Shown here one piece after another: positions 37,041-57,491 of a DNA stretch of 64,000 bases. Below the pieces are notes generated by a model that searched no databases, was not told the origin of the DNA, and saw only the letters and a list, made by a program, of their open reading frames with translations. Numbering within the stretch: the first letter of the stretch is position 1; each line of letters opens with the position of its first letter. Position numbers and translations under genes: made by a program. The DNA is taken from sequence record MZ443780.1; one strand, given 5' to 3'.

Positions 37041-37087
37041 TCTATCAATAGCGGCAGCGCTCACGGGTGCTGCACAGGAGAAACATT

Positions 37088-38737
37088 ATGTCATTCGATA
37101 TGCGCAAAAACGTACTCATGGTTCGCTCTATGTCTCACGGCCAACCGTTCTATAACTTCTACAATGCAGTGGGCATCGAGTTTACGCTTGCCGGTTACCA
37201 GCTTAAAGAGATTTATGATTGCCATTACCAAGGTAAGCTGAGTGGCATTCGCACGTATTGGGGCTTCTCAAACAAAGCCACCAGTGAGACTTTCGAGTTC
37301 TCATCGCGCGGCGATCTGATGTGGAACGTGTCGCTGAACAATACTTGCCACACTCTGCTTCCGTTTGAAATGATTATCGGGCATGAGGGTTTCAACGTTG
37401 TTAATGGCTTCATGATTGAAGACCATGTACGCAAGCTGATCCGAATCCACCAGAGAGCTGTTGGTCGCACTCTCGAAAGTTATGTGTGGTTCGAAAAAAT
37501 GACTGAACCTCAGATGCGTGAGATGCTGGCTGCTCTTGGCCTGGGCCCGCTGCGCATTGAACGTGCAGACCGTGCTGAACTGATCAAGATTCATACCGAA
37601 TGGCTGCGTAAGCATGACGACGAGTTTAAGTATACGCACGATGCTATTGGTCTCGATCACGACCAGAAGATACCTGCTGACTTCTACGATGACCACGGTC
37701 GCCGTATCTCTCGTCGTATGCTGGCTGCACACAAAACAGTTGAGATGATGGCCACCGAGCTGTCCAATCTCATTCGCATTTTCGACCTGAACCCTAACTT
37801 CAATCACAAAGATCCGATGTGGGAGTTCGGGCTTGCTACAATCGCCGAGCGTTTCATCTATGCAGAAGACGCGAAAGAAGCGCTTGCTGCTATTCTCGAA
37901 AACAGCCAGTTCGTTGTTAACGGTGTGTATGCGTTAGCGCGTGATTACGATTGGCGTCAAGTCAACGAAGAAACAGAGGAATACCGCCAATCGTTGATTC
38001 GTCGTCTGCTGCAAGAACTGCGCAATGAAATCGAAGCCGAAGATTCGATGTTTGTTGTCGAAGACGGGATTGTGATGATCAAAGCTGTCGCTGTCACTGC
38101 GCACAACGAACAACTGTTGGCCGAACCTGACCTCGAAGAAGATGAAGAAGAGGACGAAGAAGAAGAGGTTGATGAGGTAGAAGATACGTCCGAAGAACAA
38201 CGCGCCGTGTTGAAAGCACTCACTGCTCTGCCTGACGATTCTCTGCGTAAGCTGTGTACTAATCATAAGCTCGCGCCTAAGCATCGTATTAGAAAGCTGA
38301 CTCGCACTGAGATGATTGAACTGTGCTGCGATTCATTCGGTACTGAACTGCCTGACGATATGGATGACGTAGACCCAGAAGCTGAGGCGGAAGTTGAGGC
38401 AAAAGCTGAATCAGGCAAACGTCCACGCAAGTACCCAGCTTTGGTTGATGACGTTAATATCAGCTACGACACTATTCGCTCTATTCTCATTCGTGCTAAA
38501 ATCCCAGGCACTGATCATAAAGGCGAACTGCATCGTGGTACGAAAGAGGCCCGAGCTATCGCTCGCAAGAAAATACTCAATAGCCTGAAAACTGCTGTTG
38601 ATACAGGCTTGCTTGAGACACTGGCTGCCTTTACGCTCGAAGCACTCGCCTGTGCTCTGACTAAAATGAAAGACGGTGATCGCTATCCTCGTGACTCTGC
38701 GTACCTGAAAGAACTAATTAAACACGCAACTCGTTAA
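37088..38737 (+). CDS. Multidomain protein with two HeH-like modules and an acidic tract
   Basis: CAGGAG SD; FEKMTEPQMREMLAALGL..ADRAELIKI and LTALPDDSLRKLCTNHKLAPKHRIRKLTRTEMIELC. Confidence 0.8.
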   Translation: MSFDMRKNVLMVRSMSHGQPFYNFYNAVGIEFTLAGYQLKEIYDCHYQGKLSGIRTYWGFSNKATSETFEFSSRGDLMWNVSLNNTCHTLLPFEMIIGHEGFNVVNGFMIEDHVRKLIRIHQRAVGRTLESYVWFEKMTEPQMREMLAALGLGPLRIERADRAELIKIHTEWLRKHDDEFKYTHDAIGLDHDQKIPADFYDDHGRRISRRMLAAHKTVEMMATELSNLIRIFDLNPNFNHKDPMWEFGLATIAERFIYAEDAKEALAAILENSQFVVNGVYALARDYDWRQVNEETEEYRQSLIRRLLQELRNEIEAEDSMFVVEDGIVMIKAVAVTAHNEQLLAEPDLEEDEEEDEEEEVDEVEDTSEEQRAVLKALTALPDDSLRKLCTNHKLAPKHRIRKLTRTEMIELCCDSFGTELPDDMDDVDPEAEAEVEAKAESGKRPRKYPALVDDVNISYDTIRSILIRAKIPGTDHKGELHRGTKEARAIARKKILNSLKTAVDTGLLETLAAFTLEALACALTKMKDGDRYPRDSAYLKELIKHATR

Positions 38738-40677: not shown

Positions 40678-40687
40678 TGTTCTCTTT

Positions 40688-41490: not shown

Positions 41491-41543
41491 GCAAAAATCT
41501 GGACAAAATGAGGGTTGTCTCAAAACAGCGCCCCTGATACAAT
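41491..41543 (+). promoter_or_regulatory. Class I early promoter
   Basis: GCAAAAATCTGGACAAAATGAGGG ... TTGTCT-17-TACAAT with TG; offset 38. Confidence 0.8.
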
Positions 41544-41744: not shown

Positions 41745-42557
41745 ATGCCAAACTTACGTGCTAAACCAGAAGACAAATTTTCTAAAGCTCGTTCTGCGAA
41801 GAACTCACCTGAACGTCAGGCTGCTGCTGAGAAGAAACGCACAACCCCACGCGGTCCGTCTTCTGCTAAACCTCGTCAGTTGCCGCCGGGCTATGGCTAT
41901 AAGTCAAAAGCTACAGGCGAACGTGCGCCAGAGCGTGACGATAAAGAGTCCCAGAAACCTGATTTGAGTAAGAAAGACTGGGTTGCTCGTCGTGACGCAA
42001 CGCCGAAGATGCGTGATGAAGAACGTGTATTCAATCTCGTTCACGCAATTCTGGCTGCATGGAAAGCGGATATCGGACACGCCGAACATACGGCAGCATC
42101 TTCTGGTATCATCAAAGTGTCTCGTCGTAAAGTTGAAGGCGCATTGCGCGATCTCAAGAATACGCGCTTCACTAAAATCCCAACGCTCATCAATGAAATT
42201 CTGACACACTCTGATGTGTGTGAGGAATTCGGGATGTGGGTGTACGTCGAGCACGACACGCCGGATTGGATCTTCGTGCGTCTGCCTGAAGACAGCACGC
42301 CTGTGCTTCGCGCTGATATCGTCTACGACCGCACAGGTCAAACTGCTACGACGATCACGACTTCGAGTGAACCGCTGCTTGAAGTCTTAGGGGAAGACGA
42401 CGAGCCAGAAATGCTCGAATGCAATGAGCGCGATATTGAAGACCTTGAAACTAAGGCAATGCGCAAAGAGCTGATCGACAAGGGCATCATCAAGCCAGAA
42501 GCTGCTGATAAGCTGAGTCGACCGGATCTGATGAAGCTGTTAGCGTACTACGCATAA
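41745..42557 (+). CDS. Protein with a basic disordered N-terminus, a central domain and a C-terminal HeH module
   Basis: K/R/P-rich first ~85 aa; IEDLETKAMRKELIDKGII..DKLSRPDLMKLL. Confidence 0.8.
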   Translation: MPNLRAKPEDKFSKARSAKNSPERQAAAEKKRTTPRGPSSAKPRQLPPGYGYKSKATGERAPERDDKESQKPDLSKKDWVARRDATPKMRDEERVFNLVHAILAAWKADIGHAEHTAASSGIIKVSRRKVEGALRDLKNTRFTKIPTLINEILTHSDVCEEFGMWVYVEHDTPDWIFVRLPEDSTPVLRADIVYDRTGQTATTITTSSEPLLEVLGEDDEPEMLECNERDIEDLETKAMRKELIDKGIIKPEAADKLSRPDLMKLLAYYA

Positions 42558-42567
42558 GCAATAACGA

Positions 42568-42595
42568 GCAGGGCGCTGAAATATAGCTGCCCTGC
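42568..42595 (+). terminator. Stem-loop after the gene, possible terminator
   Basis: GCAGGGC-GCT..AGC-T-GCCCTGC; no T tract. Confidence 0.45.
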
Positions 42596-42609
42596 TATCT
42601 GCGAAGTAT

Positions 42610-42663
42610 GCAGAAAACTGGACAAAATCGTGGTTGTTATCTGACAGCCACCTATGCTACAAT
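42610..42663 (+). promoter_or_regulatory. Class I early promoter
   Basis: GCAGAAAACTGGACAAAAT ... GTGGTTGT-6-ACAGCCAC ... TG-C-TACAAT; offset 39. Confidence 0.8.
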
Positions 42664-42723
42664 ATATGCAGACGCAGTGAGCGTCGAAATCAAACTAAAC
42701 AACAATACTGAGGAGTATTTATC

Positions 42724-44322
42724 ATGGCACGTATCGAAACTAACTCTAACCTGGTTGGCAAAACTATCATCCTGCTGAACGGCACCAAATCTAAAATCGA
42801 AGATGCTATCGCGTCCGGTTACAAGGTGAAAGGTCAGAGCAAACGTATCGCAACCCGCTGCGTTATCAAAGAGGGTTCTCACTTCCGTGAGATCGAGCGC
42901 ATGAATCTGAGCCAGCTTGAAGATACCGGCGAAGGTTACGTCAAGCTGAAAGAAGCGAAAGCGTCCGGCAAGAAAACTGCCGGTAAGAAAGAAGCTGCAA
43001 CGCCGAAAGCGTCCGGCAAGAAAACTTCTGGTAAGAAAGATGCGAAACCGTCGAAAGACAAAGAACCTAAAGTTCGTCGCAAATCTTCCGAAGAGCAGTC
43101 CGAAGATTATCAGAATCTGGCACACGCTATCATCAAAGGCGGCAAAGCTAAACCTGCAGTTGAAATCGAAACTGTTGACGAAGCGCTGACCGATACTGTG
43201 GCAAAACGTATCGCCGATATCGTGCTTAACACTGACGTTGCGAAAGTGTGCGCTGATAACAAAACGCCGATCGCAAACGCCCTGGATGTTACTTACGGCG
43301 CCGAGTATGCTGCTGATGGTAACGTCATGCAGATCACTCTGAACCTGCAATACGCGAAGCCTGTCAAAGTGCTTGCTCGCCCTACGCTCGAAAATGCAGA
43401 AGCTATCGCAATGCGAGCGCAGAAAATGATCGCGCCTAAGCTGTCTAAGAAGCTGGCGAAAGCGATTCGTGAAGCGTTCAATATCGAAGACGCAGACGAG
43501 CTGGAAGCAGGTACTATGCTGCTGAAAGACGGCGAAGAGTTTGTCTTCTACGGCGAATCTGCGAAGCACCTCGGCAAAGCGCTGCTGTATGTCGTAGCTA
43601 CCGACAAGTTCAAATCTGTCCTTGGCTCTACGCTGGGTGAGTACGAAATCCCAGACGCAGAAGAAGAAAACGACGACGAGGAAGAAGTCGAAGAAGAGGA
43701 AGAAGAAGAGGTCGAAGAGGAAGAGGAAGAAGAAGACGGCGAAGAAGATAGTGAAGAAGACGGCGAAGAAGAAGATGCCGCCGAGTACGAATACGTCAAA
43801 GTCACTAAAGACCATATCAGCATGGTTAACAAGAAAGTGACCGCGAAGTATCACGCCGCGCTGGCTGAACGCTTCAACACTACCGAAGAAGTTCTCGTCC
43901 CTGGCCTCGTATTGACTGACGGCGACACAACGTTCGCGTACCTTGGCTGTGATAGCAAAGGCGGCCTGCTCGTTATCGACGTAGAAGCTGAGGCAGATGA
44001 TGAAGATGTTCTGCTGTATAGCAAAGCGGATATCAAAACGCTGAACGACTTCAACCCTGTGATCGATAGCGGCCTCGTTTCTGACGACGAAGAAGAAGAC
44101 GGTGAAGAAGATACCGAAGACTTCGAAGACGGTAACGACGATGAAGAAGAAGAAGACGGCGAAGACGAAGAAGAGAGCTTCGAATTTGACGACGAAGAAT
44201 CTGTTGACCTCGAAGATCTGTCTGACGACGAACTGCGTGAACGTGCCGTTGAGCTGGGTCTGACTACACCGCGCAAATCTGAAAACATGACCGGCGCACA
44301 ACTGCGCAAGCTGCTGAAATAA
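42724..44322 (+). CDS. Charge-segregated protein: basic N-half, poly-D/E tracts, duplicated small domain, C-terminal HeH
   Basis: GAGGAG SD; KASGKKT repeat with a 48-bp period (42957, 43005); two acidic tracts. Confidence 0.85.
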   Translation: MARIETNSNLVGKTIILLNGTKSKIEDAIASGYKVKGQSKRIATRCVIKEGSHFREIERMNLSQLEDTGEGYVKLKEAKASGKKTAGKKEAATPKASGKKTSGKKDAKPSKDKEPKVRRKSSEEQSEDYQNLAHAIIKGGKAKPAVEIETVDEALTDTVAKRIADIVLNTDVAKVCADNKTPIANALDVTYGAEYAADGNVMQITLNLQYAKPVKVLARPTLENAEAIAMRAQKMIAPKLSKKLAKAIREAFNIEDADELEAGTMLLKDGEEFVFYGESAKHLGKALLYVVATDKFKSVLGSTLGEYEIPDAEEENDDEEEVEEEEEEEVEEEEEEEDGEEDSEEDGEEEDAAEYEYVKVTKDHISMVNKKVTAKYHAALAERFNTTEEVLVPGLVLTDGDTTFAYLGCDSKGGLLVIDVEAEADDEDVLLYSKADIKTLNDFNPVIDSGLVSDDEEEDGEEDTEDFEDGNDDEEEEDGEDEEESFEFDDEESVDLEDLSDDELRERAVELGLTTPRKSENMTGAQLRKLLK

Positions 44323-44343
44323 TCTCGCTGTAAACTGAACGAC

Positions 44344-44374
44344 TGTGCGGTTCAAATCGAGCCGCACATTTATT
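44344..44374 (+). terminator. Intrinsic terminator
   Basis: TGTGCGGTTC-AAATC-GAGCCGCACA-TTTATT. Confidence 0.7.
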
Positions 44375-44403
44375 GACAACTAAGCTGATTGAGGAATCAC
44401 ACT

Positions 44404-45642
44404 ATGTCAAACGCAAACAAAAATCTGCTGAATGCCCGTGTTCGTCGTCTGGACGGTACTACCACTTACATCAACAAAGTGAACGCTAACGGTTATAGCA
44501 CCGACGCGAAGGGCCCTCAAATCCCTGTGAAACGCATCGTGCTCGCGGGCAAAACGCTGAAAGAGATTGAAGCGCCCTACGCGAAAACTGAGCACGTTCT
44601 GATTGACGGCATCACTGTGAAGCTGAACAAGCGCCAGCAAAAAGATCTGCGCAACGATGAAATCGACGTTGACACGATCAAGCCTGATTTTAGTTCTCTG
44701 GTGTACATCGACCCGGAAACAGGCAAGCCTGCTGTAGCGAAAGCTACGAAGCCGAAAGGCGGTGTGAAAGCGACGCGCGAGCGCAACAAAGACACGCGCT
44801 CTAAGAAAGAGCGTAAAGCAGAAGCAGACGCGTCGAGTGCTGACCTCGATATGATCCCACGCTCTGATGCGATTGACCGCAAAGCAGAGCTGGTGCAAAT
44901 GATCGACGCGACAATCGCCGACGCAACGACGAAAGATCGTCGCAAGATGTTGAGCGAAGCGTTTGACATGGACTGGAAAGATGTTAAGCATCACGGTGGC
45001 AAGGGTGTTGTCAAGCACATGGGACGCAAGGCAGCACAACGCGCCTGTGATAAGCTGCGCGTAGCAACTACCAGCGATGCGTATATTAAGCAGATGCCCA
45101 TCGAGCTTAAACGTCTTATTCAAGACGGTAAGCTGACGCTCAACAAGAAACAGATTGAGCGTGTGTTAGACGTGTTTGGGCTTGATATGCAGTTCTATGC
45201 AACTGCGATGCAGACGCTGCTGGGTAATCTCAAGCTGTCGCTCGATAAATCTATCGAGAACCCGAAAGTGAAAGAGAAGAAAGCGAAACACAAACTCGCT
45301 GTGCCGACCTACGCGTCTGAGAAAGAACAGACCAAGCGTGTGCGCAAGATGACTGTAAAACTCATCAAGCCGCCGAAGTCTGCAATGGCAGAGGCGAAAG
45401 CGCACATCAAAGAGTCGAAAGCGACTATCGCCAAGAAGCTGGGCATCAAGCCTGCTGACGTGAAGCGTGGTCTGCTGTGTTATAAACCGAACGGCGTTGA
45501 GCTGATGTTCGTAGCTTGCGACATGACCGGCCCTGTCTTCGTTGAGAAAGACGGTAGCGAGTGCGTAATGTCACACGCGAACGTGAAGCACACTTTCAAC
45601 CTGACGCTGGGCACTAACTCTGAACTGGACGCGGCTGTATGA
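44404..45642 (+). CDS. Basic paralog of the 42724 protein
   Basis: GAGGA SD; shares N- and C-terminal domains with 42724; K-rich. Confidence 0.85.
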   Translation: MSNANKNLLNARVRRLDGTTTYINKVNANGYSTDAKGPQIPVKRIVLAGKTLKEIEAPYAKTEHVLIDGITVKLNKRQQKDLRNDEIDVDTIKPDFSSLVYIDPETGKPAVAKATKPKGGVKATRERNKDTRSKKERKAEADASSADLDMIPRSDAIDRKAELVQMIDATIADATTKDRRKMLSEAFDMDWKDVKHHGGKGVVKHMGRKAAQRACDKLRVATTSDAYIKQMPIELKRLIQDGKLTLNKKQIERVLDVFGLDMQFYATAMQTLLGNLKLSLDKSIENPKVKEKKAKHKLAVPTYASEKEQTKRVRKMTVKLIKPPKSAMAEAKAHIKESKATIAKKLGIKPADVKRGLLCYKPNGVELMFVACDMTGPVFVEKDGSECVMSHANVKHTFNLTLGTNSELDAAV

Positions 45643-46022
45643 CGAACAACGAGATTATCCTGACAGGTGTATTTGCTCAATTGTACTCGCGGCTGACTAC
45701 AGCCGCTGTACTTGAAACGTATGTGTACTATTCTGATTTGGCCCCTGTAGTGTTTGGTGTGCAACTGTCCACCGTGAGCAATTCGCAGTACAACGCCTTG
45801 TGGGAACTCGTTGCGAAAACAATGCGCGTCGATATCGCAGCGGGCAGACCACCGCTTGCTGCGTTGTACGTGTCTCGCGCAACTGACGAGAAGACACCGA
45901 GCAAAAAGTTCTTCAAAGAATACTACAAACTCACGGGCGTACATCTGTCTGAGACAGACTGGCGAGCACTCGTTGAACATGTGTGGAAATCTTATGCACC
46001 AGATCTTCGGGAGCCATCATGA
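45639..46022 (+). CDS. Hypothetical protein
   Basis: ATGA overlap; GRPPLAALYV. Confidence 0.7.
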   Translation: MTNNEIILTGVFAQLYSRLTTAAVLETYVYYSDLAPVVFGVQLSTVSNSQYNALWELVAKTMRVDIAAGRPPLAALYVSRATDEKTPSKKFFKEYYKLTGVHLSETDWRALVEHVWKSYAPDLREPS

Positions 46023-46480
46023 AAAAGGCCAAAGTTGTAATTAGTCGCGGTGGCTATAGACCGTCATCGCAAGAAGAATCTCAAAAGCTGGTCGCTGAGT
46101 TTCTTCTCGGTAATATCGGAATCAACCCTACTGTTATCAGCCAGCAAATGTTGCTCAACATTGCGAACTATAACTACCTGACGTCTATCGTAGACACGGG
46201 CAAAGCTACGCAAGCGAACCAGAGCACATTGCATAAAACTGTAAAAGAACTTAATGCGTTCTGTAGATCGCACAAAATTCCTCTGGGTTTGCTAATTATG
46301 CCCCATACTTCGACCAGCGATTATGCCGGTGATGAGGTGGTAGCGATTCCTTGGGAGCATGTGCGCTCGAACACATTGAGCCAGTCGGCCATCGAATCTC
46401 TGTTTGAAACAGTTGAAGCTGATGGTTACCCGCAGTTTGTGACTGATGCGAAGACAGTAGAGGGATACAATGTTTTATGA
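46019..46480 (+). CDS. Hypothetical protein
   Basis: GGGAG SD; ATGA overlap. Confidence 0.7.
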   Translation: MKKAKVVISRGGYRPSSQEESQKLVAEFLLGNIGINPTVISQQMLLNIANYNYLTSIVDTGKATQANQSTLHKTVKELNAFCRSHKIPLGLLIMPHTSTSDYAGDEVVAIPWEHVRSNTLSQSAIESLFETVEADGYPQFVTDAKTVEGYNVL

Positions 46481-47750
46481 TCACGTATTCAACCACGACG
46501 AGAAGCAATTGCTTTTGAAGGTGGCTGAGTCTAAATATCTGGTGCGGCTAGACTGCCCCGACTATTTGAAGAAGTCGAAACACGCGATTGAGATCAGACA
46601 TACTGTGACCAACCGTGGCGAGCAACGTCGAAGCGGTACGATAACAACCGCATTCGTACCGCGCATTCATTCTGCGACTGTGCAGCGACTGGTACGTGAA
46701 GTGCGAGACAGCCAAAGCAAAAGCGCGTCTGAGGGACTCGCTGCGTTATTCGAGTTAGGCCTGGGTGTGCCGAAGCAACGTGATATCGCAACGTACCTGC
46801 GCGACTACTCGCGTGAGAACGATAAGAAGGGTGTGGGTATCAAGTATATCCGCAAACTGATTAATGAGTATCACCGCAAGCACCGTCATAGTTTTGCTGG
46901 CAGTCGCTGGTTGATGCCCGCTGCGTATACAGCGAACATGCTCAACATGCAGTCGTTCATTCATCTGAAAGAGAACGGTTACTCGAAGAAAGTCAAAGTA
47001 CCTGACGGCGTTCCTGTGATCTTCATCTATCAGAACACGAACCACGAGAATGCAACGTACAGCATGTGTGACGCATTCGTGATTAGCCCGCTCGGTTACC
47101 CGATGCCGTTCGCTCAAATCGCGTTGCGCCCTGAGTTCAAAGCTGCGCCGAAAGAGTTCAGCTCGAAAGCGTTTCGTGGTAAGAGCATGTACGCTATGGT
47201 AATGGGTGTGCTGCACTGGGAGAAGGGCGATGCGCTCGATAACTTCCGTGAGCTGGTGGAGATTGACGACGAGCCGTATCTGACGTTGCTTAGTGATGAA
47301 CGTTATGCTGATCGTCGTTCGCCTGAGTATCAAGCTCTACTGGACGAACGTGCTGCGATGAATGCGAAGCGCCAGAAGTGGAGTGACGTGATTGCGAAGT
47401 ATGGCAACACGACACGCACACTCAAGCCAGAACAGGCTGAGCGTCTGGCAAAAGCCGAAGCGTTCTTCATTAAGCGCAAAGAGTTCTTGGACGCTTTCGA
47501 CAAGTTCGAAAAGAAAGAGAACAGCAAAGCCGCCCGTAAGTTTGCTGCCGCATCTGCATCGTTCGCTGCTGTTGATTGTGGTGTTGTGATTGACCGAACA
47601 ACGTATCGCTCTGTGTCGTCAGGCTTGGATGTTGTGAACAAGATTCTCACTCGCTGGGGATTCACGACAATCAACACTGTCGATAGTAGTCAGAAGAAAT
47701 CCATTTTAACCTATGACCTGAAAAATGCAAGTCGCATTTGGTCTCTGTAA
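46470..47750 (+). CDS. Basic hypothetical protein
   Basis: GAGGGA SD; 426 aa. Confidence 0.8.
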   Translation: MFYDHVFNHDEKQLLLKVAESKYLVRLDCPDYLKKSKHAIEIRHTVTNRGEQRRSGTITTAFVPRIHSATVQRLVREVRDSQSKSASEGLAALFELGLGVPKQRDIATYLRDYSRENDKKGVGIKYIRKLINEYHRKHRHSFAGSRWLMPAAYTANMLNMQSFIHLKENGYSKKVKVPDGVPVIFIYQNTNHENATYSMCDAFVISPLGYPMPFAQIALRPEFKAAPKEFSSKAFRGKSMYAMVMGVLHWEKGDALDNFRELVEIDDEPYLTLLSDERYADRRSPEYQALLDERAAMNAKRQKWSDVIAKYGNTTRTLKPEQAERLAKAEAFFIKRKEFLDAFDKFEKKENSKAARKFAAASASFAAVDCGVVIDRTTYRSVSSGLDVVNKILTRWGFTTINTVDSSQKKSILTYDLKNASRIWSL

Positions 47751-47776
47751 ACAACTTATCTGAGGAGATAACGCAC

Positions 47777-50700
47777 ATGTCTAATAACAATCTGGGTGGC
47801 GCTGCTGCTTTTGGCTCTGAGACACAAAAGCATCTGTCCGAACAACAACGCCGCGCTTCATCGTCTGAAAGCGGTCACGTAAACAAATGCACAATCGTTG
47901 TGCTGACCTCGCTTAATGCTCATAATCGTTTCTCGTGGATGACGGCAGACGAGCAACTGAAAGAAAAGCAGATCGAAGGTAAAGTGCTCGACCGTTTGCC
48001 AAAACTGATCGAACGTGCGACTGGCCCGTCTACTGACACGAACAGCGCGTACTTCATTTTGCACCCAAACAACGGTGTGCCTACTCGCATTGACGAGCGT
48101 ATCAAAGTCGGCGAAGGCGATGCAGTAATCGTTTCATATACTGTAAACAAAGCAGTGTCTGAAATGCACGGTAGTTTATCGCTTGCTCTGTTTAGCGCGG
48201 GTGAAACTGACCTGGCTGATCTGGCATCTGAGTATGGCATCCACACCATCTCGATTGTCGAAGAAAGCAAAGCTGGTCCGTTCATCAAAGCGCTCGCCGC
48301 ACAGGTGGAAGCTCTGCAAACTGTAAATATCAGTAGCATTGACGAAACTGATGGTGCGTTCGAAAAAGCGGTAATTGACTACAGCGTTCTGCCGGGTAAC
48401 CCTGTAACTGTACTGACCGGCGCTGTGCGTACCTTCATCATGCAAACTATTAGTGGCGAAGTCTTCGCTGCAATCCCCAATAACGGAGAACTGAACGTGA
48501 AACAACCTACCACTGCACCGATTGTCGACCTGAGCGAAGACTTCGACGAAGGTGATGAAATCATCGACCAGAACGAAGGCGACAATGACGGTGAAGCTAC
48601 CGGTACTGATCTGCTGGGCTACAAAGCAGAAACTCTGACTATCGAACAGATGGTCGAAGCGCTCGAAGCGCTGGAGTACGATGTGTCTGCGATGAGCGAA
48701 GAAGGTATTCGTGAATCGTTCCTCACTGAGCAGGAACTCTGGTTGAGCAACAACGATCAGTCTGCCACTGACGACGAAGAAGAAGAAGACGGTGAAGAAG
48801 TTGACGGCGATGCCGAAGACGAAGAAGCCGAAGAGGACAGCGAAGAAGAAGAGTTTGACGCTGTGCAATTCCTCGCTTCTGTGCTGGTTGCCGAAGAACT
48901 GGATCGTGACGGCCTGAAAGTTCTGATTCGTACTCAAGACCTGAAGGTCATGAAGTCTGACACCGTCGAAACTCTGACCGCCAAACTGCTTGAGCTGGTC
49001 GAAGGCGCTACCGAAGAAGAGATGGTAGAAACGCTGAACACCTTCGTAGCTGCTCTGCAAGAGCGTGGCATCGACTGTCCAAACATGCTGGCCGCTCTGT
49101 CTTCTGATGAAGAAGACGAAGAAGAAGAAGTTGACGGCGAATCCGAAGAAGAGGAAGAAGAAGATTCTTCCGAAAGCGCGGACGAAGAAGAAGACGAAGA
49201 CGACATTCAGGCGCAAATCGACGCTGTGACTGATCCTCTCGACTACTTCGCTTTCGCCGGCGGTATGCTTGACGCTGAACAGCGTTCTGCCGCAGTTGCT
49301 GCGATGGGCGAAGACACCACGAACATGACCATTGTTCAGGTGATGAAAGCGTTCACCCGTATTCAAAGCCAGACCAATACTCTGGACATTGAAGCCGAAG
49401 CGCATGACGAAGACGCAGAAGACGCGTCAAACGTTGACACTCTGACTGAACTGCTGGGTCAGTATGACGAAGACACCGTTGAGCACGTAGCTGGCGCTCT
49501 GGGTATCGACACTGCTGGTTGCGAAAATGTAGACGAAGTAATTGCAGCAATCGCAGACGGCGGTAGCGAAGAAGACTTCGCAGTAATCGAAGCGCTGGCA
49601 ACCGACCTGGGTGTTGACCTGTCAGAAGTTGCTGACGGCGATCAGCTGGATTATGTTGACGCTGTGCTCGCTGTGCTGCCGGTGTACTTCGAAGACTCAG
49701 ACGAAGACGACACCGAGCAGGAAGAAGAGTCCGACGAAGAAGTTGAAGACGAAGGCGATAACGAACACGAGCAAGCTGCCGAAGGCGATGACGCTAACGA
49801 TAGCATGAAGTTCGTCACTGACGTTGACACCGAAAACTCTGTCGGCCCGATGCTGTCTGTCGATATGGACCAGACGCTGATCATCAACTACACCCTGACC
49901 GACGGTGACACCTACTCTGCAATCGAAAGCGAGCTGGCTGATATCGAAGGTGTTAACTACCGCTTCCCGTTCAACCTGGGTAAAGCCGGTAAAGCGCAGG
50001 GCTCTATGCACCTGCCAGCGCAGTCTCTGCTGGAAATCTGCGAGCGTGTTAAAACAACTCGTTTCCTCGCTGACCCGCGTTCGTTCGATGTTGCTGTGTG
50101 GTCTAGCAGTCTTGAGCAAACTCTGGAGCAGGAAATCCGTGCTGCGCTGTATGCCGGTCGTATCGAAGAAGGTATGGACCCAAGCGAAGCGGGCATCGTA
50201 GTTGGTGACTTCATCGACGACGAAGAAATGCGTGAAGCGATGGAACTCGGTCACATCGACCCGTCGCAGTACGACGAACTGCAGGGTGAGCGTCTGCCGA
50301 TTGAAAGCCTGTATAGCGCACGTACTCGCGTTCGCCCAGTTCAGGTTGACACTGCACACGTTGCACTGCACACCACCGTGCTGAACATCGCGCTGCCGGG
50401 CTTCTGGGGTGATCAGTCTGTTGCACGTATGATGCAGGGCGCAGTTAACCGCGTCATCGCTCAGGCGCAGTCTACCGAAGGCATCAAAGTGTACGCTGGC
50501 TTCACTATGGAATCTGCTGCACTGGTCAACAACGACCGCCTGTTTGAAGCGCTGGAAACTCTGCGTAGCTTCGACGGTGTTCAGTCTTACTCTGCCGCTG
50601 ATGCTGCAAACTTCGACGACGCCGAAGATGTTATCGAAGTAGCGTCTGCACTGGACACTCGCGACCTGCCGTTGTCTGTGCTGTCTGGTGGCCTGGCCGC

Positions 50701-50806
50701 TGCAACGTTCGACAACGGCGGTGACCTGACCATTCTGATTCCGTGCTCTGTCGAAGAAGAAGACGAGCTGGACGAAGAAGCAGAAGACGAAGGCGACGAC
50801 GAGTAA
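47777..50806 (+). CDS. Very large, highly acidic protein with repeated short helical modules
   Basis: GAGGAG SD; ~1009 aa; several D/E tracts separating helical hairpin segments. Confidence 0.88.
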   Translation: MSNNNLGGAAAFGSETQKHLSEQQRRASSSESGHVNKCTIVVLTSLNAHNRFSWMTADEQLKEKQIEGKVLDRLPKLIERATGPSTDTNSAYFILHPNNGVPTRIDERIKVGEGDAVIVSYTVNKAVSEMHGSLSLALFSAGETDLADLASEYGIHTISIVEESKAGPFIKALAAQVEALQTVNISSIDETDGAFEKAVIDYSVLPGNPVTVLTGAVRTFIMQTISGEVFAAIPNNGELNVKQPTTAPIVDLSEDFDEGDEIIDQNEGDNDGEATGTDLLGYKAETLTIEQMVEALEALEYDVSAMSEEGIRESFLTEQELWLSNNDQSATDDEEEEDGEEVDGDAEDEEAEEDSEEEEFDAVQFLASVLVAEELDRDGLKVLIRTQDLKVMKSDTVETLTAKLLELVEGATEEEMVETLNTFVAALQERGIDCPNMLAALSSDEEDEEEEVDGESEEEEEEDSSESADEEEDEDDIQAQIDAVTDPLDYFAFAGGMLDAEQRSAAVAAMGEDTTNMTIVQVMKAFTRIQSQTNTLDIEAEAHDEDAEDASNVDTLTELLGQYDEDTVEHVAGALGIDTAGCENVDEVIAAIADGGSEEDFAVIEALATDLGVDLSEVADGDQLDYVDAVLAVLPVYFEDSDEDDTEQEEESDEEVEDEGDNEHEQAAEGDDANDSMKFVTDVDTENSVGPMLSVDMDQTLIINYTLTDGDTYSAIESELADIEGVNYRFPFNLGKAGKAQGSMHLPAQSLLEICERVKTTRFLADPRSFDVAVWSSSLEQTLEQEIRAALYAGRIEEGMDPSEAGIVVGDFIDDEEMREAMELGHIDPSQYDELQGERLPIESLYSARTRVRPVQVDTAHVALHTTVLNIALPGFWGDQSVARMMQGAVNRVIAQAQSTEGIKVYAGFTMESAALVNNDRLFEALETLRSFDGVQSYSAADAANFDDAEDVIEVASALDTRDLPLSVLSGGLAAATFDNGGDLTILIPCSVEEEDELDEEAEDEGDDE

Positions 50807-50819
50807 TATCGTCTGATTG

Positions 50820-50847
50820 AGCGGCTCGAAAGGGCCGCTTACCTTTC
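50820..50847 (+). terminator. Probable terminator
   Basis: AGCGGCTC-GAAA-GGGCCGCT-TACCTTT. Confidence 0.65.
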
Positions 50848-50863
50848 TTGGGGATCTGTAAAC

Positions 50864-51694
50864 ATGACACAAGAAGTAGACCACGGCGCTAACATTGTAC
50901 AGATGATTACTGCCCGTGACGATAAAATCCGCGAACTGACTGAAAGCAACGAACAGACTGCTGGCCGCAACGAAGATGTTGAAGCCGAGTTGCAGGAACT
51001 GTCCCGCGATCATCTGGCGCTCAAAATCAAACTGCGTAGTACCGAGCGTGAGCACACCGCTGAAATCGCACTACGCGATGAGCGCATTCGTGAAGTTGTT
51101 GGATTCTGCAATGAGCAGTCCCAACAAATTCGTGAACTGCAAGCAGAACTCGAATCTGTAAAGAATAGTCAGACACCGATGAGTGTAACGCAGCATGCCC
51201 TGCATACAATCATGACCGCTGGTGTTAGCAAGTATCATGCTATCGTTGCGCAGTTATCCCAGCATAGCGTGAACAACGATTCAAACAAATCGCGGCGCGC
51301 TATCAATACGCTGTATCAAACCGATACCGTGACAGCGCATCCCTCGATGTACCGCGCAATTGCTCGCTACGTTAATGCCTCAGGTAGTACGCTACCATCG
51401 GTAGACGCACTGCGTAAAGCGATTCGCCAGTACATCGTCGATAACCACGACCTCTTCTACAAAGATGCTGAGTACGAGTTATCGCGGTTGGCACTACGTG
51501 AAGTCTGGGTGATGAAACGCAACCCTGCGCACCTGGGTTTTGCTGCACGTAATATCTGTCAGGCGTTCGATTGGTTACCCGCTGCATACAACGATGACCT
51601 CGATATGCTTGACGACGAAAGTGAGTATGAAGATTTATTTGTCGATTCTGTTGCGAAAATTTGTACGCATTTGATTGACGATAGCTTTAAATAA
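50864..51694 (+). CDS. Coiled-coil protein
   Basis: Heptad-like N-terminal ~100 aa. Confidence 0.75.
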   Translation: MTQEVDHGANIVQMITARDDKIRELTESNEQTAGRNEDVEAELQELSRDHLALKIKLRSTEREHTAEIALRDERIREVVGFCNEQSQQIRELQAELESVKNSQTPMSVTQHALHTIMTAGVSKYHAIVAQLSQHSVNNDSNKSRRAINTLYQTDTVTAHPSMYRAIARYVNASGSTLPSVDALRKAIRQYIVDNHDLFYKDAEYELSRLALREVWVMKRNPAHLGFAARNICQAFDWLPAAYNDDLDMLDDESEYEDLFVDSVAKICTHLIDDSFK

Positions 51695-51695
51695 A

Positions 51696-51730
51696 TCTGT
51701 AAAACTTTCCTGCAATCGAATCTGTAAACA
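51696..51730 (+). promoter_or_regulatory. Tandem class II motifs
   Basis: TCTGTAAAAC at 51696 and TCTGTAAACA at 51721. Confidence 0.5.
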
Positions 51731-51787
51731 CTAATTGAAGTTCGAACCGAGCACTACGCTCAAACTAATACATCCCGGAGTATTACA

Positions 51788-52333
51788 ATGTCTAAAGTTG
51801 CAAAGAACAGTTCACTGGTTCCTACCCTGGCTCAACGTATCGCTAAGAAGTCTGGCTCTATCGGTACTTCAAAAGTTAAGCCGTCTGAGCTGCCGCACGA
51901 CATTCTGATCGAAAGCGTTCACGCTGTTGAGCTGATTGGCTTCATCACTGACCGCACCGAAAACAGCGTTACCATTCGTCACAAACGTGGCTTTGGTTCT
52001 TCTGCGCAAATCGTTTCTACTTTCGGTCCTAACCAAATCCTGTCTGTCCTGGGTGAAGCCGGTACGCACGGTAGCGTTACTGCTCTGATCTCTGCTCCGA
52101 TTCGTGAGTACAAAGGCTTCAAAGTTAAATACGTTGGCTCCATGATCCACGCGACCTCCGTTGAAACCGGTGAAGTTGTTCAGATCAATACCGCGCTGCC
52201 TGGTTACACCGTGCGTCCTACCGTGAACGAAACTGCTGCTGCTAAAAAGTACGGCACCCCGGCGCCAGCCAAAGCTGCTAAGAAAGACAAAGCAGAAAAA
52301 TCTGGCAAGCTGGCCAAGAAAGTAAAAAAGTAA
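51788..52333 (+). CDS. Basic beta-rich protein with a K/A-rich tail; possible Sm/LSm-like fold
   Basis: GGAG SD; strong codon bias; ELIGFITDRTENSVTIRH..IVSTF..ILSV. Confidence 0.75.
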   Translation: MSKVAKNSSLVPTLAQRIAKKSGSIGTSKVKPSELPHDILIESVHAVELIGFITDRTENSVTIRHKRGFGSSAQIVSTFGPNQILSVLGEAGTHGSVTALISAPIREYKGFKVKYVGSMIHATSVETGEVVQINTALPGYTVRPTVNETAAAKKYGTPAPAKAAKKDKAEKSGKLAKKVKK

Positions 52334-52370
52334 TAAAGTCTGACGAAGACTTTTAACTGACTTTCTGAAA

Positions 52371-52437
52371 TCTGTAAATATTAAGTATGCAGCGAGATAA
52401 AAAGTTCTCGCTGCCTGTCTCTCGAAATCTGTAAATA
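52371..52437 (+). promoter_or_regulatory. Tandem class II motifs flanking a 9-bp inverted repeat
   Basis: GAAATCTGTAAATATTAA twice (cores at 52371, 52428); GCAGCGAGA/TCTCGCTGC at 52389-52414. Confidence 0.6.
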
Positions 52438-52482
52438 TTAATTGAAGCAACGTCGCTTCTACTCAAACAGGAAATAAATACC

Positions 52483-53274
52483 ATGGCTAAAGCAACCGCA
52501 AATACCGCAGCAATCGTTCTGGCTAAAATGCTGGGCGTAGTTATCGAAAGCGCCGATGCGAAAGAAATCGCAGCAATTCTGAAAGAAGCCGGTCTGACTG
52601 TCTCTGGCGGTAAAGTGGTAAAAGCTGAAAAAGGCGGTAAAGCTGCTAAAGGCAAAAAGGCTAAAGCGCCTACCGTTGCTGAAATCGTCGCTGCTGTTAA
52701 AGACGAAGAAGAACTGGACATCTCCGGCGTTGACGAAGATACTCTGCGCGAAGCAGTGATCAAAGCCAAGCTGTCTACCAAGAAAAAGGCAGGCGCGCTG
52801 GACGAAGATGAACTGCGCGAACTGCTGAACGACAACCTGGGCGGCGAGTCCGAAGAGGACGAAGACGACGAAGAAGAAGAAGAGGACGAGGACGAAGACG
52901 ACTCGGACGACGAAGATGAAGACGGCGACGACGACGAAGACGAAGACGACGACTCTGATGATGAAGAAGAGGACGAAGACGACGAAGACGGCGACGACGA
53001 AGAAGAGGACGAAGACGACGAGGACGAAGATGAAGACGAGGACGAAGATGATGAAGACGCCCTCGACCTCGACGACCTCGACAAGAAAGAGCTGTTAGCT
53101 CTGGTCCTGGAACACAAGCTCGCGCCGAAGAAAAAGGCGTCTAAGATGGACGAAGACGAACTGCGCGAACTGTGCGAATCTCACTTCGGCGGTGACGACG
53201 AAGAAGACGACGAAGACGAAGATGAAGACGACGAAGACTTCGACGACGAAGACGAAGACGAAGACGACGAGTAA
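52483..53274 (+). CDS. Polyacidic protein: basic N-domain, two HeH modules, 71-aa D/E tract
   Basis: CAGGA SD; 66 of 71 residues are D/E at 52846-53058; acidic C-tail. Confidence 0.88.
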   Translation: MAKATANTAAIVLAKMLGVVIESADAKEIAAILKEAGLTVSGGKVVKAEKGGKAAKGKKAKAPTVAEIVAAVKDEEELDISGVDEDTLREAVIKAKLSTKKKAGALDEDELRELLNDNLGGESEEDEDDEEEEEDEDEDDSDDEDEDGDDDEDEDDDSDDEEEDEDDEDGDDEEEDEDDEDEDEDEDEDDEDALDLDDLDKKELLALVLEHKLAPKKKASKMDEDELRELCESHFGGDDEEDDEDEDEDDEDFDDEDEDEDDE

Positions 53275-53326
53275 TATCATCTGATCTCCGGCGCGCCCCT
53301 CTAGTTCTGACGAATGAGCGAGGGGC

Positions 53327-53401
53327 AAATATTCGATAAAATATTTCGAATATTTTTGTAAAAAGTTTCAAAATTTCTTGCAGACGTATGTTGAATATAA
53401 T
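53327..53401 (+). promoter_or_regulatory. AT-rich region with a 10-bp inverted repeat and TATAAT
   Basis: AAATATTCGA (53327-36) / TCGAATATTT (53346-55); TATAAT at 53396. Confidence 0.5.
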
Positions 53402-53492
53402 AATGTACGTCTACAGGAAATCAAAACCTGAACAAATTTATCTTTTCATCCAGCGGTGAAAACGCCGCATCAAAACAAAGTAAGGAAATCCA

Positions 53493-54011
53493 ATGAGCAA
53501 GAAAATCGTTAGCGGCCTGAACAAAGAAATCCGCGCCCTGGACAAGTCTGAGAAAAACCTGGTTAAAACTGCTGCTGGCCTGACCAAAGAAGCAGAAGCG
53601 ATCGCTGAACGTCGCGCTAACCTGACTGCCCAGGTTGAAGCTCTGCAAACTGGCGGTGACGCTGCTCCAGCTAAAGCTGCTAAGCCTGCGAAAGCAGACA
53701 AGAAAGCTAAAGCTGAAAAAGCGGCCAAGCCTGCTAAAGCAGAAAAAGCTGGTAAGAAGGCTAAAGCTGAGAAAGCTGAGAAGCCTGCCAAAGCTGAAAA
53801 AGCTGGTAAGAAAGCTAAAGCAGAAAAAGCTGAAAAGCCTGCTAAAGCTGACAAGAAAGCTAAAGCTGCTAAGGCAGACAAAAAATCCGCTAAGCCTGCC
53901 AAAGCTGAAAAAGCTGGCAAGAAAGCAAAAGCTGAAAAGCCGGCCAAAGCTGATAAAAAAGCTAAAGGCAAAAAGAAAGAAGCCGAAGACTTCGACTTCG
54001 ATATGGAATAA
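53493..54011 (+). CDS. Histone H1-like (AlgP/Hc2-type) K/A/P repeat protein with an N-terminal coiled coil
   Basis: KPAKAEKAGKKAKAEKAE twice exactly plus partial copies; AAGGA SD. Confidence 0.85.
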   Translation: MSKKIVSGLNKEIRALDKSEKNLVKTAAGLTKEAEAIAERRANLTAQVEALQTGGDAAPAKAAKPAKADKKAKAEKAAKPAKAEKAGKKAKAEKAEKPAKAEKAGKKAKAEKAEKPAKADKKAKAAKADKKSAKPAKAEKAGKKAKAEKPAKADKKAKGKKKEAEDFDFDME

Positions 54012-54044
54012 GCAAGTAATCGCGCACTAGCGGTCACTTGATCG

Positions 54045-54076
54045 AAAGGGCAGCGCTGACGAGCGTTTGCCCTTTT
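54045..54076 (+). terminator. Intrinsic terminator
   Basis: AAAGGGCAGCGCT-GACG-AGCGTTTGCCCTTTT. Confidence 0.8.
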
Positions 54077-54110
54077 GTCATATCTGTCTCGAATTTTTTG
54101 AGGTTACCCA

Positions 54111-54596
54111 ATGTCTGCTGAACATCTTCTCAATGACGACCTGCCTGACGATACTCGCGTTCCCCAAACAAAAGAAAAGCCTAGCTACTACGAGCTAATG
54201 TCTCTGCGCTTAGAAGCTGGTGCACGTCTTTCCCGCGCTATCAAAACGTTACGTGATGCTAACGTTCTCCCAACATCTGGCACTGGTTCAACGCTTCTCG
54301 CTGCTGCTCTAGACGTAGCCGAACGTCACTTCGCTGATATCTGCATGGGACTTGTTCCTGTTCGTGACGGTGCTGACGTATGCACAATCAAAATGCGTGA
54401 AGACCTTCCCGCGTGTGTCGAAGCGTTTCGCATTATCGTTATGGAACATGCGCAACGTGAAGCCCTTGAGCGTGAGTGCCGTAACATGATCGCTGACGGT
54501 AACGGCTTCAAGATTCTCACTCAGCCTCAAGTGCTGCACATCGAAAACAAACACGTCTGTAATGAGGACTGCAATCATGGGCCAGAAACTGTCTGA
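54111..54596 (+). CDS. Hypothetical protein
   Basis: GAGGT SD. Confidence 0.75.
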   Translation: MSAEHLLNDDLPDDTRVPQTKEKPSYYELMSLRLEAGARLSRAIKTLRDANVLPTSGTGSTLLAAALDVAERHFADICMGLVPVRDGADVCTIKMREDLPACVEAFRIIVMEHAQREALERECRNMIADGNGFKILTQPQVLHIENKHVCNEDCNHGPETV

Positions 54597-55323
54597 GCAA
54601 ATCAACCGCTATTTCAATCTCATGGAGAAAATCCGTGAGCAAATGTACCGCGTACTGCCTGTATCTAATCGCTACCTGTGTGTAGTAAGTTTCAGCACTC
54701 AACTACAGGCACTCCAGTGTGTGCTTGTAAGCAAAGAGTCGCTCATGGAAGCGAAGCTCATTGAAGGCCTAACGGGGCAAGAGCTGATCACCTATGGTCA
54801 GTACATGAGAACAGCCGAAGAGTGGGTCGCCAACGGTATGCAAGATGATTACCCGTTCACTCAGGATAAAGATGTGTACGAGGAGTACCGCAGCCTGACA
54901 CGCGACGAACAGATGCCTGTTCCTGAAATGGATGATGGCGAAGAAGATGATCTCGACGTACAGGAGATGGACGATCTGCGTACATCAATTCTCTGCGCCG
55001 ACAAAGCCACACTGATGCAGATGTTTGCTGACGAAGGCTTAGGTACAAAAGGAACTGCTGCTGATATGGATGTGGGTCAGTTGCAGGATGCTCTGTGCGA
55101 TCACTATGGCCTTAACCCGGATGTTGGCGTCAAAGTTGTTGACGTTGTTGGTGCGTTGGTTGAGCGTTTAGAAAACATGCCTAAACACGAAGCTCTGAAA
55201 GAAGCGCATCACCTGACAAAAGAGGAACTGCTCAGTCTCGCAGACGCATGGGGAATTGAGAAAGACGCACACGAAAGCACAATGCGCTCTCTGATTAAGG
55301 GTCATATACTGCGCCGTACTTAA
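54577..55323 (+). CDS. Acidic protein with HeH-like modules
   Basis: GAGGA SD before ATG 54577; ILCADKATLMQMFADEGL..ADMDVGQLQDALCDHYG. Confidence 0.75.
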   Translation: MGQKLSEQINRYFNLMEKIREQMYRVLPVSNRYLCVVSFSTQLQALQCVLVSKESLMEAKLIEGLTGQELITYGQYMRTAEEWVANGMQDDYPFTQDKDVYEEYRSLTRDEQMPVPEMDDGEEDDLDVQEMDDLRTSILCADKATLMQMFADEGLGTKGTAADMDVGQLQDALCDHYGLNPDVGVKVVDVVGALVERLENMPKHEALKEAHHLTKEELLSLADAWGIEKDAHESTMRSLIKGHILRRT

Positions 55324-55330
55324 CTCAAAC

Positions 55331-55386
55331 TCTGCAAATAGTTGGACAGAATGCGGGTATATAAGAATAGTCTTATGTGATATAAT
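55331..55386 (+). promoter_or_regulatory. Class I promoter of the topoisomerase operon
   Basis: TCTGCAAATAGTTGGACAGAAT ... TG-A-TATAAT; offset 38. Confidence 0.75.
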
Positions 55387-55460
55387 AGCTAGAGACAAGT
55401 AGTGTCTGAACTTGCTAATATCGAGTAGTCTACATGCTACTCACTCAGGAGAACACGAAA

Positions 55461-57491
55461 ATGGCCAAAGCGCCTAAAGCCGTTAAGGTTAAAAAGAAAA
55501 CGGGAGATGGGTCCGAACAAGAAGGATTCATGATCGCAGAAGGTCTTGATGGTATAAGACTGAATCCCGGGATGTACATGGGGGAGCGCGGTCCCGATAT
55601 GGCTTACCGTGCTGTCAAAGAACCTGTAGATAACGATTACGACGAATACATCGCAGGTCGAAACAAACTTATCGAAGTAGTCATTGATTACGATAACGAC
55701 CTGAACGTTGTCGCAGATATGGCGAAAGGTATTCCTACCGACTTCAAGAAATTGAAAGATGGTTCGAAAGAAACGATCATGACCGCAGCGTTTAGCCGTG
55801 CTCACGCTGGTGGCAAGTTCGATGATAAAGCATATAAGACCTCTGCCGGTACTCACGGTGTAGGCGTTGCAGCACTGAACGCAATCTCAAGTCGCCTGCG
55901 TGTGTGGTCAATGTACAAAGGCGGTTGTGCGTATCAGATGTGGGAGTGCGGCGTTGCCAAATCTGGCAAAGACCCGAAACAAGTTAAAGCAGTAGACAAA
56001 GATGTTATGTCTCTGCTGCGTGAAAAGAAACACAACAAGTACGGTACGATTGTCGCGTGGACGCTCGACCAGACTGTCGTGTCTGCTGACGTGCAGCGTG
56101 GTAAGAAGCTGCCTAAGAACTATCGTCACGCTGCACCAGACCCAGCGCAACTTGGTTCGTGGCTGCGTAACATGTCTATGCTCAACCCTGGACTCGAAGT
56201 TCGCCTGACGTTGATCAAGAAAGGCAAGCGCAAAGAGTTCACTTTCATCAACAAGAAAGACCTTGTGCATGTCGTGAAGACGATGGTGGAAGAACGTGAG
56301 CTGGGTTCTGTTGGCAAGCCGTTCATCTTCAAAAACGACAACATCACTGCTGCGCTGACGTGGACAGATCACGCCGACACTGATAACTTCCTCAGTTTCG
56401 TTAACACAAGCCCTACAATTGACGGCGGGTGGCACGTTGTAGGTTTCCGTGATGCGCTGTTCGAAGCAATCAAACCTTTCATGAAAGAATCGAAAGGCAA
56501 AGGCAAGAAGAAGCAGAACTTCAAACAGGAAGATTTGCTTATCGGCCTGACTGGTATGTTCGACTGGCGTATGCACGGCGCTCAGTACACGTCACAGGTT
56601 AAAGACAAGCTGGCGAGCCGTGTTGAAAAAGAAGTATACGAGATGCTGAAAGATGCGTTCGTGAAATACTTCAAGGACAATAAGAAAGTCGCAACGACGA
56701 TCATCAAACGTGCCGAAGCGATGAACAAAGGCCGCGAAGAATTGTCCGCTGTTGTTAAGTCTATGGCAGACACGAAGAAGAAGCTGAAGGGCAACGCACT
56801 CCCTGCTGACCTGATATCTGCGCTCAAGTGTAAGCCCCACGAACGTGAGCTTATCGTTGTAGAAGGTGACTCTGCTGGTGGTACTGCGAAACACGCACGT
56901 AACCCTGACCATCAGGAAGTTATGCTCGCTGGTGGTAAACCGCTCAACGGTCTGAAAGCAAGTCTGGCTGATGTGCTCAAACACAAAGAAGTTCAAGGCA
57001 TGTTGGTATCTGTTGGTGCAGACCTGAAATCGTTAGACCCGAAAGCAGAAGCGCCGAAACTGAGTACGAAGAATCTGCGTATCGGTAACCTACTGTTCCT
57101 GATGGATGCTGACCCAGACGGCTTCCACATCGCAACGTTGTTCCTGGGTGTTATCTATCGTCTGCTGCCTGACCTGATGAAAGAAGGGCGTGTGTGGATT
57201 GTCGATGCTCCTCTGTATAACGTGATGCACAAAGGCATTCACTATGGCGGTATGTCATTTGACGAATGCCGCGCGAAAGCGCCTGCTGCTGTAAAAGATA
57301 AAGAAATCGTTCGTGCAAAAGGTTGGGGTGAAGTCGAACCTGATGTGCTCGAAGCGATTGCATTTAATCCGAAGACTCGCCGCTTGATTCGTGTGAACCC
57401 ATTCACTAGCGTTGAGCAAGAGCGCTTCTTCCGTGGTGTGCTGGCAGAAGATGCAGTCCATCGTCGTCGTCTGCTGGGTCTGGAGGAATAA
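55461..57491 (+). CDS. gyrB: Type IIA topoisomerase ATPase/TOPRIM subunit (GyrB/ParE-like)
   Basis: GLDGIRLNPGMYMG, EPVDN, HAGGKFD..YKTSAGTHGVGV, VEGDSAGG, MDADPDG, KGWGE. Confidence 0.93.
   Translation: MAKAPKAVKVKKKTGDGSEQEGFMIAEGLDGIRLNPGMYMGERGPDMAYRAVKEPVDNDYDEYIAGRNKLIEVVIDYDNDLNVVADMAKGIPTDFKKLKDGSKETIMTAAFSRAHAGGKFDDKAYKTSAGTHGVGVAALNAISSRLRVWSMYKGGCAYQMWECGVAKSGKDPKQVKAVDKDVMSLLREKKHNKYGTIVAWTLDQTVVSADVQRGKKLPKNYRHAAPDPAQLGSWLRNMSMLNPGLEVRLTLIKKGKRKEFTFINKKDLVHVVKTMVEERELGSVGKPFIFKNDNITAALTWTDHADTDNFLSFVNTSPTIDGGWHVVGFRDALFEAIKPFMKESKGKGKKKQNFKQEDLLIGLTGMFDWRMHGAQYTSQVKDKLASRVEKEVYEMLKDAFVKYFKDNKKVATTIIKRAEAMNKGREELSAVVKSMADTKKKLKGNALPADLISALKCKPHERELIVVEGDSAGGTAKHARNPDHQEVMLAGGKPLNGLKASLADVLKHKEVQGMLVSVGADLKSLDPKAEAPKLSTKNLRIGNLLFLMDADPDGFHIATLFLGVIYRLLPDLMKEGRVWIVDAPLYNVMHKGIHYGGMSFDECRAKAPAAVKDKEIVRAKGWGEVEPDVLEAIAFNPKTRRLIRVNPFTSVEQERFFRGVLAEDAVHRRRLLGLEE

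Follow-up and report, generated by a model that had tools for sequence, protein, structure and literature searches.

The genome of Erwinia phage pEa_SNUABM_40 (MZ443780.1) ends in a stretch of 64,000 nucleotides, referred to here as the window, in which positions 41745-55323 are occupied by a cluster of genes for highly charged acidic and basic proteins. The analysis of this cluster revealed that its gene order and the net charges of its products are kept in every lineage examined of the PaBG/Lu11/Y3 clade of giant phages. The abundance implied by codon usage, the conserved charge, the pairing of polycations with polyanions, the promoters of non-structural type and the replication context fit a polyelectrolyte system that would be abundant in the infected cell, would not belong to the virion and would act on replicating phage DNA. 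We regard this as the best explanation of the sequence data and propose it tentatively.

The host of this giant phage, a 267-kb Alexandravirus, is the fire-blight bacterium. The interval is 100% identical to the pEa_SNUABM_40 record, window base 41745 being record base 244866. It holds 13 coding sequences with locus tags 00321-00333, here g321-g333, whose positions match those of the record and all of which are annotated in GenBank as 'hypothetical' (Table 1).

Charge of the cluster proteins and its conservation

A first-pass annotation of this DNA had listed four proteins with long runs of aspartate and glutamate (D/E). Three of them, g322, g327 and g330, are strongly acidic, and comparison with shuffled sequences showed that their charges are segregated (z-scores 12, 10 and 13, respectively). 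The fourth, g333, has only a modest negative charge and a short tract. The proteins listed as basic or basic-tailed (g321 at its N-terminus, g323, g329 and g331) are all so, and g326 is likewise basic. The same annotation had called g331 H1-like. Its gene contains tandem repeats with periods of 27 and 54 nt, and the protein is rich in lysine (K, 29%) and alanine (A, 28%) with 4% proline (P), in agreement with that description; with 15% D/E it is a well-mixed polyampholyte and thus not a pure H1-type tail.

From g322 through g331 and on to topoisomerase II, the order of genes and the signs of the charges are the same in the Dickeya phages AD1 and JA33 and in the Erwinia phages Y3 and Yoloswag. 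The same arrangement is found in the marine phage NCTB, upstream of its topoisomerase, and in PaBG, about 10-17 kb downstream of the PaBG topoisomerase; in Lu11 the counterparts lie about 6-14 kb downstream of the topoisomerase. Profile searches established homology of g322, g324, g326, g329, g330 and g331 in the NCTB cluster, and of g329 and g331 in PaBG and Lu11, the Lu11 homologues being gp163 (g329) and gp165 (g331). Lu11 gp164 and gp157 are analogues of g330 and g322 by charge and position, and gp161 is a positional candidate for g326. A structure search with g327 returned a 420-residue protein with the length of NCTB 076 (E 7e-7) and a 356-residue PaBG protein with the length of gp127 (E 3e-5).

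The charges are best followed in the triad g329-g330-g331. In 19 IMG/VR loci g329 has a net charge of +11 to +16, g330 of -84 to -106 and g331 of +26 to +32. The corresponding values are +14, -93 and +31 in PaBG, +17, -99 and +25 in Lu11, and +11, -100 and +28 in NCTB, so that over all these genomes the three proteins stay within +11 to +17, -84 to -106 and +25 to +32. The charge of g330 is near-constant, yet its orthologues vary from 150 to 294 residues and contain from none to four copies of a two-helix module described below. The NCTB orthologue of g329 has its basic tail at the N-terminus instead. Synteny across related jumbo phages had been set beforehand as a refuting test for a DNA-organising system, and both the cluster and its charges proved to be kept throughout the lineages examined.

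Conservation is not uniform within the cluster. Genes g321, g328, g332 and g333 are poorly conserved, and g321 is an accessory gene that is present in AD1 and Yoloswag and absent from Y3 and JA33. Long acidic tracts are also not confined to it: among crude open reading frame calls in 171 kb of Y3, eight have a tract of at least 12, three of them in the 13-kb cluster and five elsewhere. Long acidic tracts are thus concentrated in the cluster, though it does not contain all of them. Both observations are compatible with a series of genes that have no function in common and in which the low-complexity tracts are tolerated repeat expansions. We consider this very unlikely, as net charge varies little even between deeply diverged phages, gene order is conserved, g322 and g323 are paralogues, and the genes have promoters in common and strong codon bias.

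Expression signals and evidence on the virion

Codon usage was examined in Y3, where CTG accounts for 71-100% of the leucine codons in the orthologues of g327, g329, g330 and g331, and GAA and TTC are also favoured. The Y3 major head gene has the same preferences, and the polymerase, terminase and tail genes of that phage use CTG for 25-45% of leucines. Genes g327, g329, g330 and g331 of the window have the same codon preferences as their Y3 orthologues. Such close agreement with the major head gene in codon choice implies abundance on a stoichiometric scale. The strong codon bias reported by the first-pass annotation was found in g322 as well as in these four genes, and not in g323 or g326.

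Two promoter-like motifs were identified, with 7 matches against 0.37 expected and 4 against 0.08, in agreement with the earlier statement that several genes have promoters of their own. Motif A, a predicted sigma-70-like promoter, precedes g321, g322, topoisomerase II and the gene after topoisomerase II, and it is common to g322 and topoisomerase II in five genera. Motif B has a CTGTAAA core and precedes g329 and g330. The same core is annotated as 'putative middle/late promoter' in the Lu11 record, where a doubled copy stands before the g330 analogue, and motif B precedes the NCTB orthologues too. In Y3, 21 sites co-oriented with genes were found against about 5 expected, among them sites before DNA polymerase A and a methyltransferase. 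The major head and sheath genes of Y3 are not preceded by motif B, and the assignment of the motif to a non-structural promoter class is by contrast with these genes only.

Further putative control elements are strong terminator-like hairpins after g322 and g327 and, some 80 nt before g331, a 10-bp inverted repeat that encloses an AT-rich -10-like box. The repeat has been kept in four other phages, where two compensatory pairs across genera were noted, and may serve as an operator or form a 5' hairpin.

Abundance similar to that of the major head protein, as judged from codon usage, and a promoter annotated as middle/late in Lu11 would also be in line with a role in head assembly. The prohead core of phage T4 is a mixture of acidic scaffold proteins and basic internal proteins, and the cluster resembles it as a set of oppositely charged phage proteins that appear to be abundant. 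By analogy, basic g329 and g331 would travel with the capsid DNA, and acidic g330 and g327 would neutralise them in the prohead and leave on packaging. The cluster differs from the T4 core in its position in the replication block, outside the head module, and in its promoter class, the CTGTAAA core being missing before the Y3 head and sheath genes as described above. The Y3 head module moreover has a very acidic protein of its own, whose gene is flanked by those for the head protease and the major head protein (691 residues, net charge -138; record 106082-108157). It is annotated as 'ATPase', which looks compositional, and is probably a scaffold; the scaffold role is thus plausibly filled already. 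In PaBG, the one member of the clade with proteomic data, 14 virion protein bands have been identified (PMC7412058), and the orthologues gp124-gp131 are not among them, although the list comprises Coomassie-visible bands only, in which acidic low-complexity proteins are easily missed. The PaBG bands and the Y3 acidic protein weigh weakly against a capsid role, and we consider a prohead core or packaged internal proteins unlikely.

Table 1. Features of the cluster and its surroundings (positions in the window; net charges are those of whole proteins unless stated)
Feature	Position	Strand	Description
g314	37085..38737	+	outside the interval; acidic tract, then two-helix module (about 38228-38341)
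Motif A upstream of g321	41500..41543	+	conserved upstream box and extended -10
g321	41745..42557	+	270 residues, net charge -1; first 60 residues +11
Motif A upstream of g322	42620..42663	+	conserved in five genera
g322	42724..44322	+	532 residues, net charge -67
Two-helix module of g322	44218-44319	+	C-terminal
Terminator-like hairpin after g322	44344..44368	+	-17.1 kcal/mol, z -4.8
g323	44404..45642	+	412 residues, net charge +27; basic paralogue of g322
g324	45639..46022	+	small, neutral; start overlaps g323 stop; kept out to NCTB
g325	46019..46480	+	small, neutral; start overlaps g324 stop
g326	46470..47750	+	426 residues, net charge +19; basic folded protein
g327	47777..50806	+	1009 residues, net charge -191; giant acidic protein
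Terminator-like hairpin after g327	50818..50841	+	
g328	50864..51694	+	net charge -14; weakly conserved; sub-threshold coiled-coil-like (ZapB/SMC) matches
Motif B upstream of g329	51720..51734	+	CTGTAAA core; phage-specific middle/late promoter type
g329	51788..52333	+	181 residues, net charge +15; conserved domain, then basic C-terminal tail
Motif B upstream of g330	52370..52441	+	two copies flanking a hairpin
g330	52483..53274	+	263 residues, net charge -96; 47% D/E, longest acidic tract 69
Two-helix modules of g330	52729-52842 and 53077-53190	+	two copies
Inverted repeat upstream of g331	53379..53415	+	10 bp, around AT-rich -10-like box
g331	53493..54011	+	172 residues, net charge +26; K 29%, A 28%
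g332	54111..54596	+	small, mildly acidic
g333	54577..55323	+	net charge -22, longest acidic tract 7; C-terminus poorly conserved
Motif A upstream of topoisomerase II	55343..55395	+	of the type found before g322
Topoisomerase II large subunit	55461-57491	+	PHROG 543, E 8e-146
Topoisomerase II second subunit	57750-59399	+	PHROG 551, E 2e-105

Upstream of the cluster are genes for a RecA/UvsX-like recombinase, a radical-SAM protein, an endonuclease and a phosphohydrolase. With recombinase and endonuclease genes on one side and topoisomerase II on the other, the cluster lies in a DNA-metabolism block; its neighbours in PaBG are a sigma factor, SSB and UvsX. The RecA/UvsX-like open reading frame (window 48-2579) encodes 843 residues, about twice the usual length, and matches RecA in Pfam without an intein domain. 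Genes g314, g317, g319 and g320 (window 37085-41490), just upstream of the interval, also encode acidic tracts, and because of these and of the two-helix module in g314 the region of charged proteins can be said to begin about 4.7 kb before the interval.

Protein architecture and the two-helix module

Protein g322 has a small beta domain at its N-terminus and a two-helix module at its C-terminus; between them are a basic linker, folded domains and two acidic tracts. In its AlphaFold2 model (mean predicted local distance difference test score, pLDDT, 66.7) the folded domains are parted by disordered basic and acidic linkers. It is paralogous to g323, the two having a common N-terminal domain (hhalign 93.7%, E 2e-7). 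In a relative from a sewage metagenome the first 75 residues of the two counterparts are near-identical, in one case as part of an acidic protein and in the other of a basic one. Protein g327 has an N-terminal domain (residues 35-235), four helical modules between acidic linkers, a C-terminal domain (675-990) and an acidic tip; its model (mean pLDDT 75.9) contains two confident alpha/beta domains and the four helical modules. The acidic tracts of both g322 and g327 are predicted to be disordered, with pLDDT below 50. Protein g330 has a short basic helical N-terminus, two modules and long D/E tracts, and g331 has an N-terminus with heptad-like periodicity, repeats of K, A, glutamate and P, and an acidic-aromatic C-terminal tip (window 53980-54011). 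This tip, kept in every lineage examined and similar to the ends of several g329 and g330 orthologues, has the look of a docking motif.

According to the first-pass annotation, five proteins share a helix-linker-helix module. A profile seeded with all five proposed copies matches them by construction and is circular, so a second profile was built from g322 and g330 orthologues only. It detected one module in g322 and two in g330 (all E<1e-14), matched g314 weakly (E 0.06) and gave nothing significant in g321, g327 or g333. A module shared by five proteins was therefore rejected, and the family is limited to g322, g330 and g314; the last lies outside the interval, and its membership rests mainly on a match to the PHROG of the g330 family (E 8e-9). 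The module is about 36 residues long. In g322 it was modelled as helices 501-510 and 524-531 joined by a short basic linker, and its pLDDT of 92-94 supports the helix-linker-helix shape. Membership of the SAP/LEM/Rho_N (HeH) group that had been suggested is not supported: sub-threshold Pfam matches point weakly to SAP and LEM, a SAP match was found in three of the 17 modules scanned (best 19.8 bits against a cut-off of 23.9), and the module profile retrieved no HeH protein from PDB sequences at E up to 10.

Scans of all cluster proteins against Pfam, NCBIfam and PHROGs matched only clade-specific PHROGs without assigned function. For g331, Pfam gave one compositional match (E 0.015), far below cut-off; the Linker_histone and HC2 models were not matched, and NCBIfam gave nothing. 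When PDB sequences were searched, individual proteins as well as g322, g327 and module profiles returned low-complexity noise only, and Foldseek comparison of the g322 and g327 models with the PDB gave no match at E<=0.001. The small beta domains of g322 had weak KOW, Tudor and PWWP-like Foldseek matches (probability 0.15-0.57), which serve as leads only. Deep searches returned clade members only (33 clusters for g327, 36 for g322 and 26 for g329), and the g326 family has 14 representatives among 1.84 billion sequences. Some database names of low-complexity orthologues are misleading: NCTB 079 is called 'Large-conductance mechanosensitive channel' and Lu11 gp158 'putative polyphosphate kinase', and the record of PaBG gp125 likens the protein to a ribosome assembly factor.

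Families restricted to one clade are common among host-interaction genes, and the cluster could accordingly serve host take-over. The polyanions would then mimic nucleic acid and soak up host nucleoid, restriction or DNA-sensing defence proteins, and the basic proteins would coat or silence host or phage DNA. Extreme D/E tracts, the high copy number suggested by codon usage and the sigma-70-like promoter of g322, of the kind expected for early genes, are compatible with such decoys. Host-interaction genes usually turn over fast, whereas this set and its charges are fixed across Erwinia, Pseudomonas and a marine host; the promoter of g330 is phage-specific and not of early type; and no cluster protein matched an anti-restriction family in Pfam or PHROG. 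No match to the families of the DNA mimics Ocr, ArdA and Arn was found in Pfam or PHROG, and the predicted disorder of the g322 and g327 acidic tracts is unlike a folded, DNA-like charge array. Overall, decoys appear to us an improbable explanation.

A possible role in the organisation of phage DNA

The polyelectrolyte system acting on replicating DNA, which we tentatively prefer, may be pictured as follows; we infer each binding step and the cellular location from sequence. The polycations g331, through its heptad-like N-terminus and K/A repeats, and g329, through its conserved domain and basic tail, would cover phage DNA and compact it. Binding of these polycations would fall to the polyanions g330, g322 and g327, as counter-ions or chaperones that keep the polycations soluble, set their grip on DNA or enter a mixed phase with them. 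Docking sites could be provided by the two-helix modules and the acidic-aromatic tips, and g322 and g323, acidic and basic proteins with a common N-terminal domain, may target one common partner.

Several observations weigh against this explanation. The decoy and prohead core explanations fit the same data, and middle/late promoters are compatible with assembly functions as well. None of the cluster proteins was assigned to a known DNA-binding family in the Pfam and NCBIfam scans, g331 has far more acidic residues than H1-type tails, and the HeH assignment derives from a predicted two-helix shape and the sub-threshold SAP matches. The limits of the PaBG band list count here too. Topoisomerase II starts directly after the cluster in pEa_SNUABM_40, as the first-pass annotation had emphasised, and is not the immediate neighbour of the cluster in PaBG or Lu11. 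The idea of a shell-less nucleoid or condensate put forward in that annotation is partly supported, namely by conservation, codon usage, promoter classes, replication context and the PaBG bands.

Comparison with known systems revealed partial similarities. Protein g331 resembles H1 tails, AlgP, Hc2 and the HupB tail in its tandem K/A-rich repeats with proline and in the charge of its orthologues (+25 to +32). It differs from them in lacking a winged-helix or any other known globular domain, in matching no Pfam family, and in its well-mixed acidic residues, heptad-like N-terminus and acidic-aromatic tip. Protein g330, a disordered-looking polyanion of about -95 encoded beside a polycation gene, with both charges conserved, recalls prothymosin-alpha with H1 and the nucleoplasmin and nucleolin tails. 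The differences are its short basic helical N-terminus and its optional modules; a nucleoplasmin-type folded core was not detected among the cluster proteins by Pfam or, for g322 and g327, by PDB fold comparison. The module shares with the SAP, LEM and Rho N-terminal domains its size of about 36 residues, the two helices, the short basic linker and the weak SAP and LEM matches, and it differs in that those matches are below Pfam thresholds and that no HeH protein was retrieved from the PDB.

With the Chimalliviridae, which build a nucleus of chimallin, pEa_SNUABM_40 has in common that it is a jumbo phage with a large replicating genome to organise. The PaBG/Lu11/Y3 clade is treated as a giant-phage cluster separate from the Chimalliviridae (PMC12390700), and family scans of about 35 open reading frames of the window, including all cluster genes, found no homologue of the chimallin shell or the PhuZ tubulin. 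If the clade lacks a protein-shell nucleus, g331 and g329 together with g330, g322 and g327 might form a chromatin- or coacervate-like DNA phase with a selected charge balance, working alongside topoisomerase II. This more specific proposal is unlikely. No such system is described in the literature searched, in which neither an account of the cluster nor data on virions or expression in Alexandravirus, Y3 or the JA phages were found, and the words histone, condensate and acidic do not occur in a 2026 review of jumbo phages.

Jumbo phages outside the Chimalliviridae must manage hundreds of kb of replicating DNA, and the cluster provides a defined and conserved set of candidate proteins, apparently of great abundance, for this task. 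Net charge that is near-constant from phages of plant pathogens to that of a marine host is a rare sign, at the level of sequence, of selection on charge itself. Even as decoys or prohead components, the proteins would account for a highly expressed block of 'hypothetical' genes in about 60 sequenced phages. Should they organise DNA, they would be a phage counterpart to basic chromatin proteins paired with acidic chaperones.

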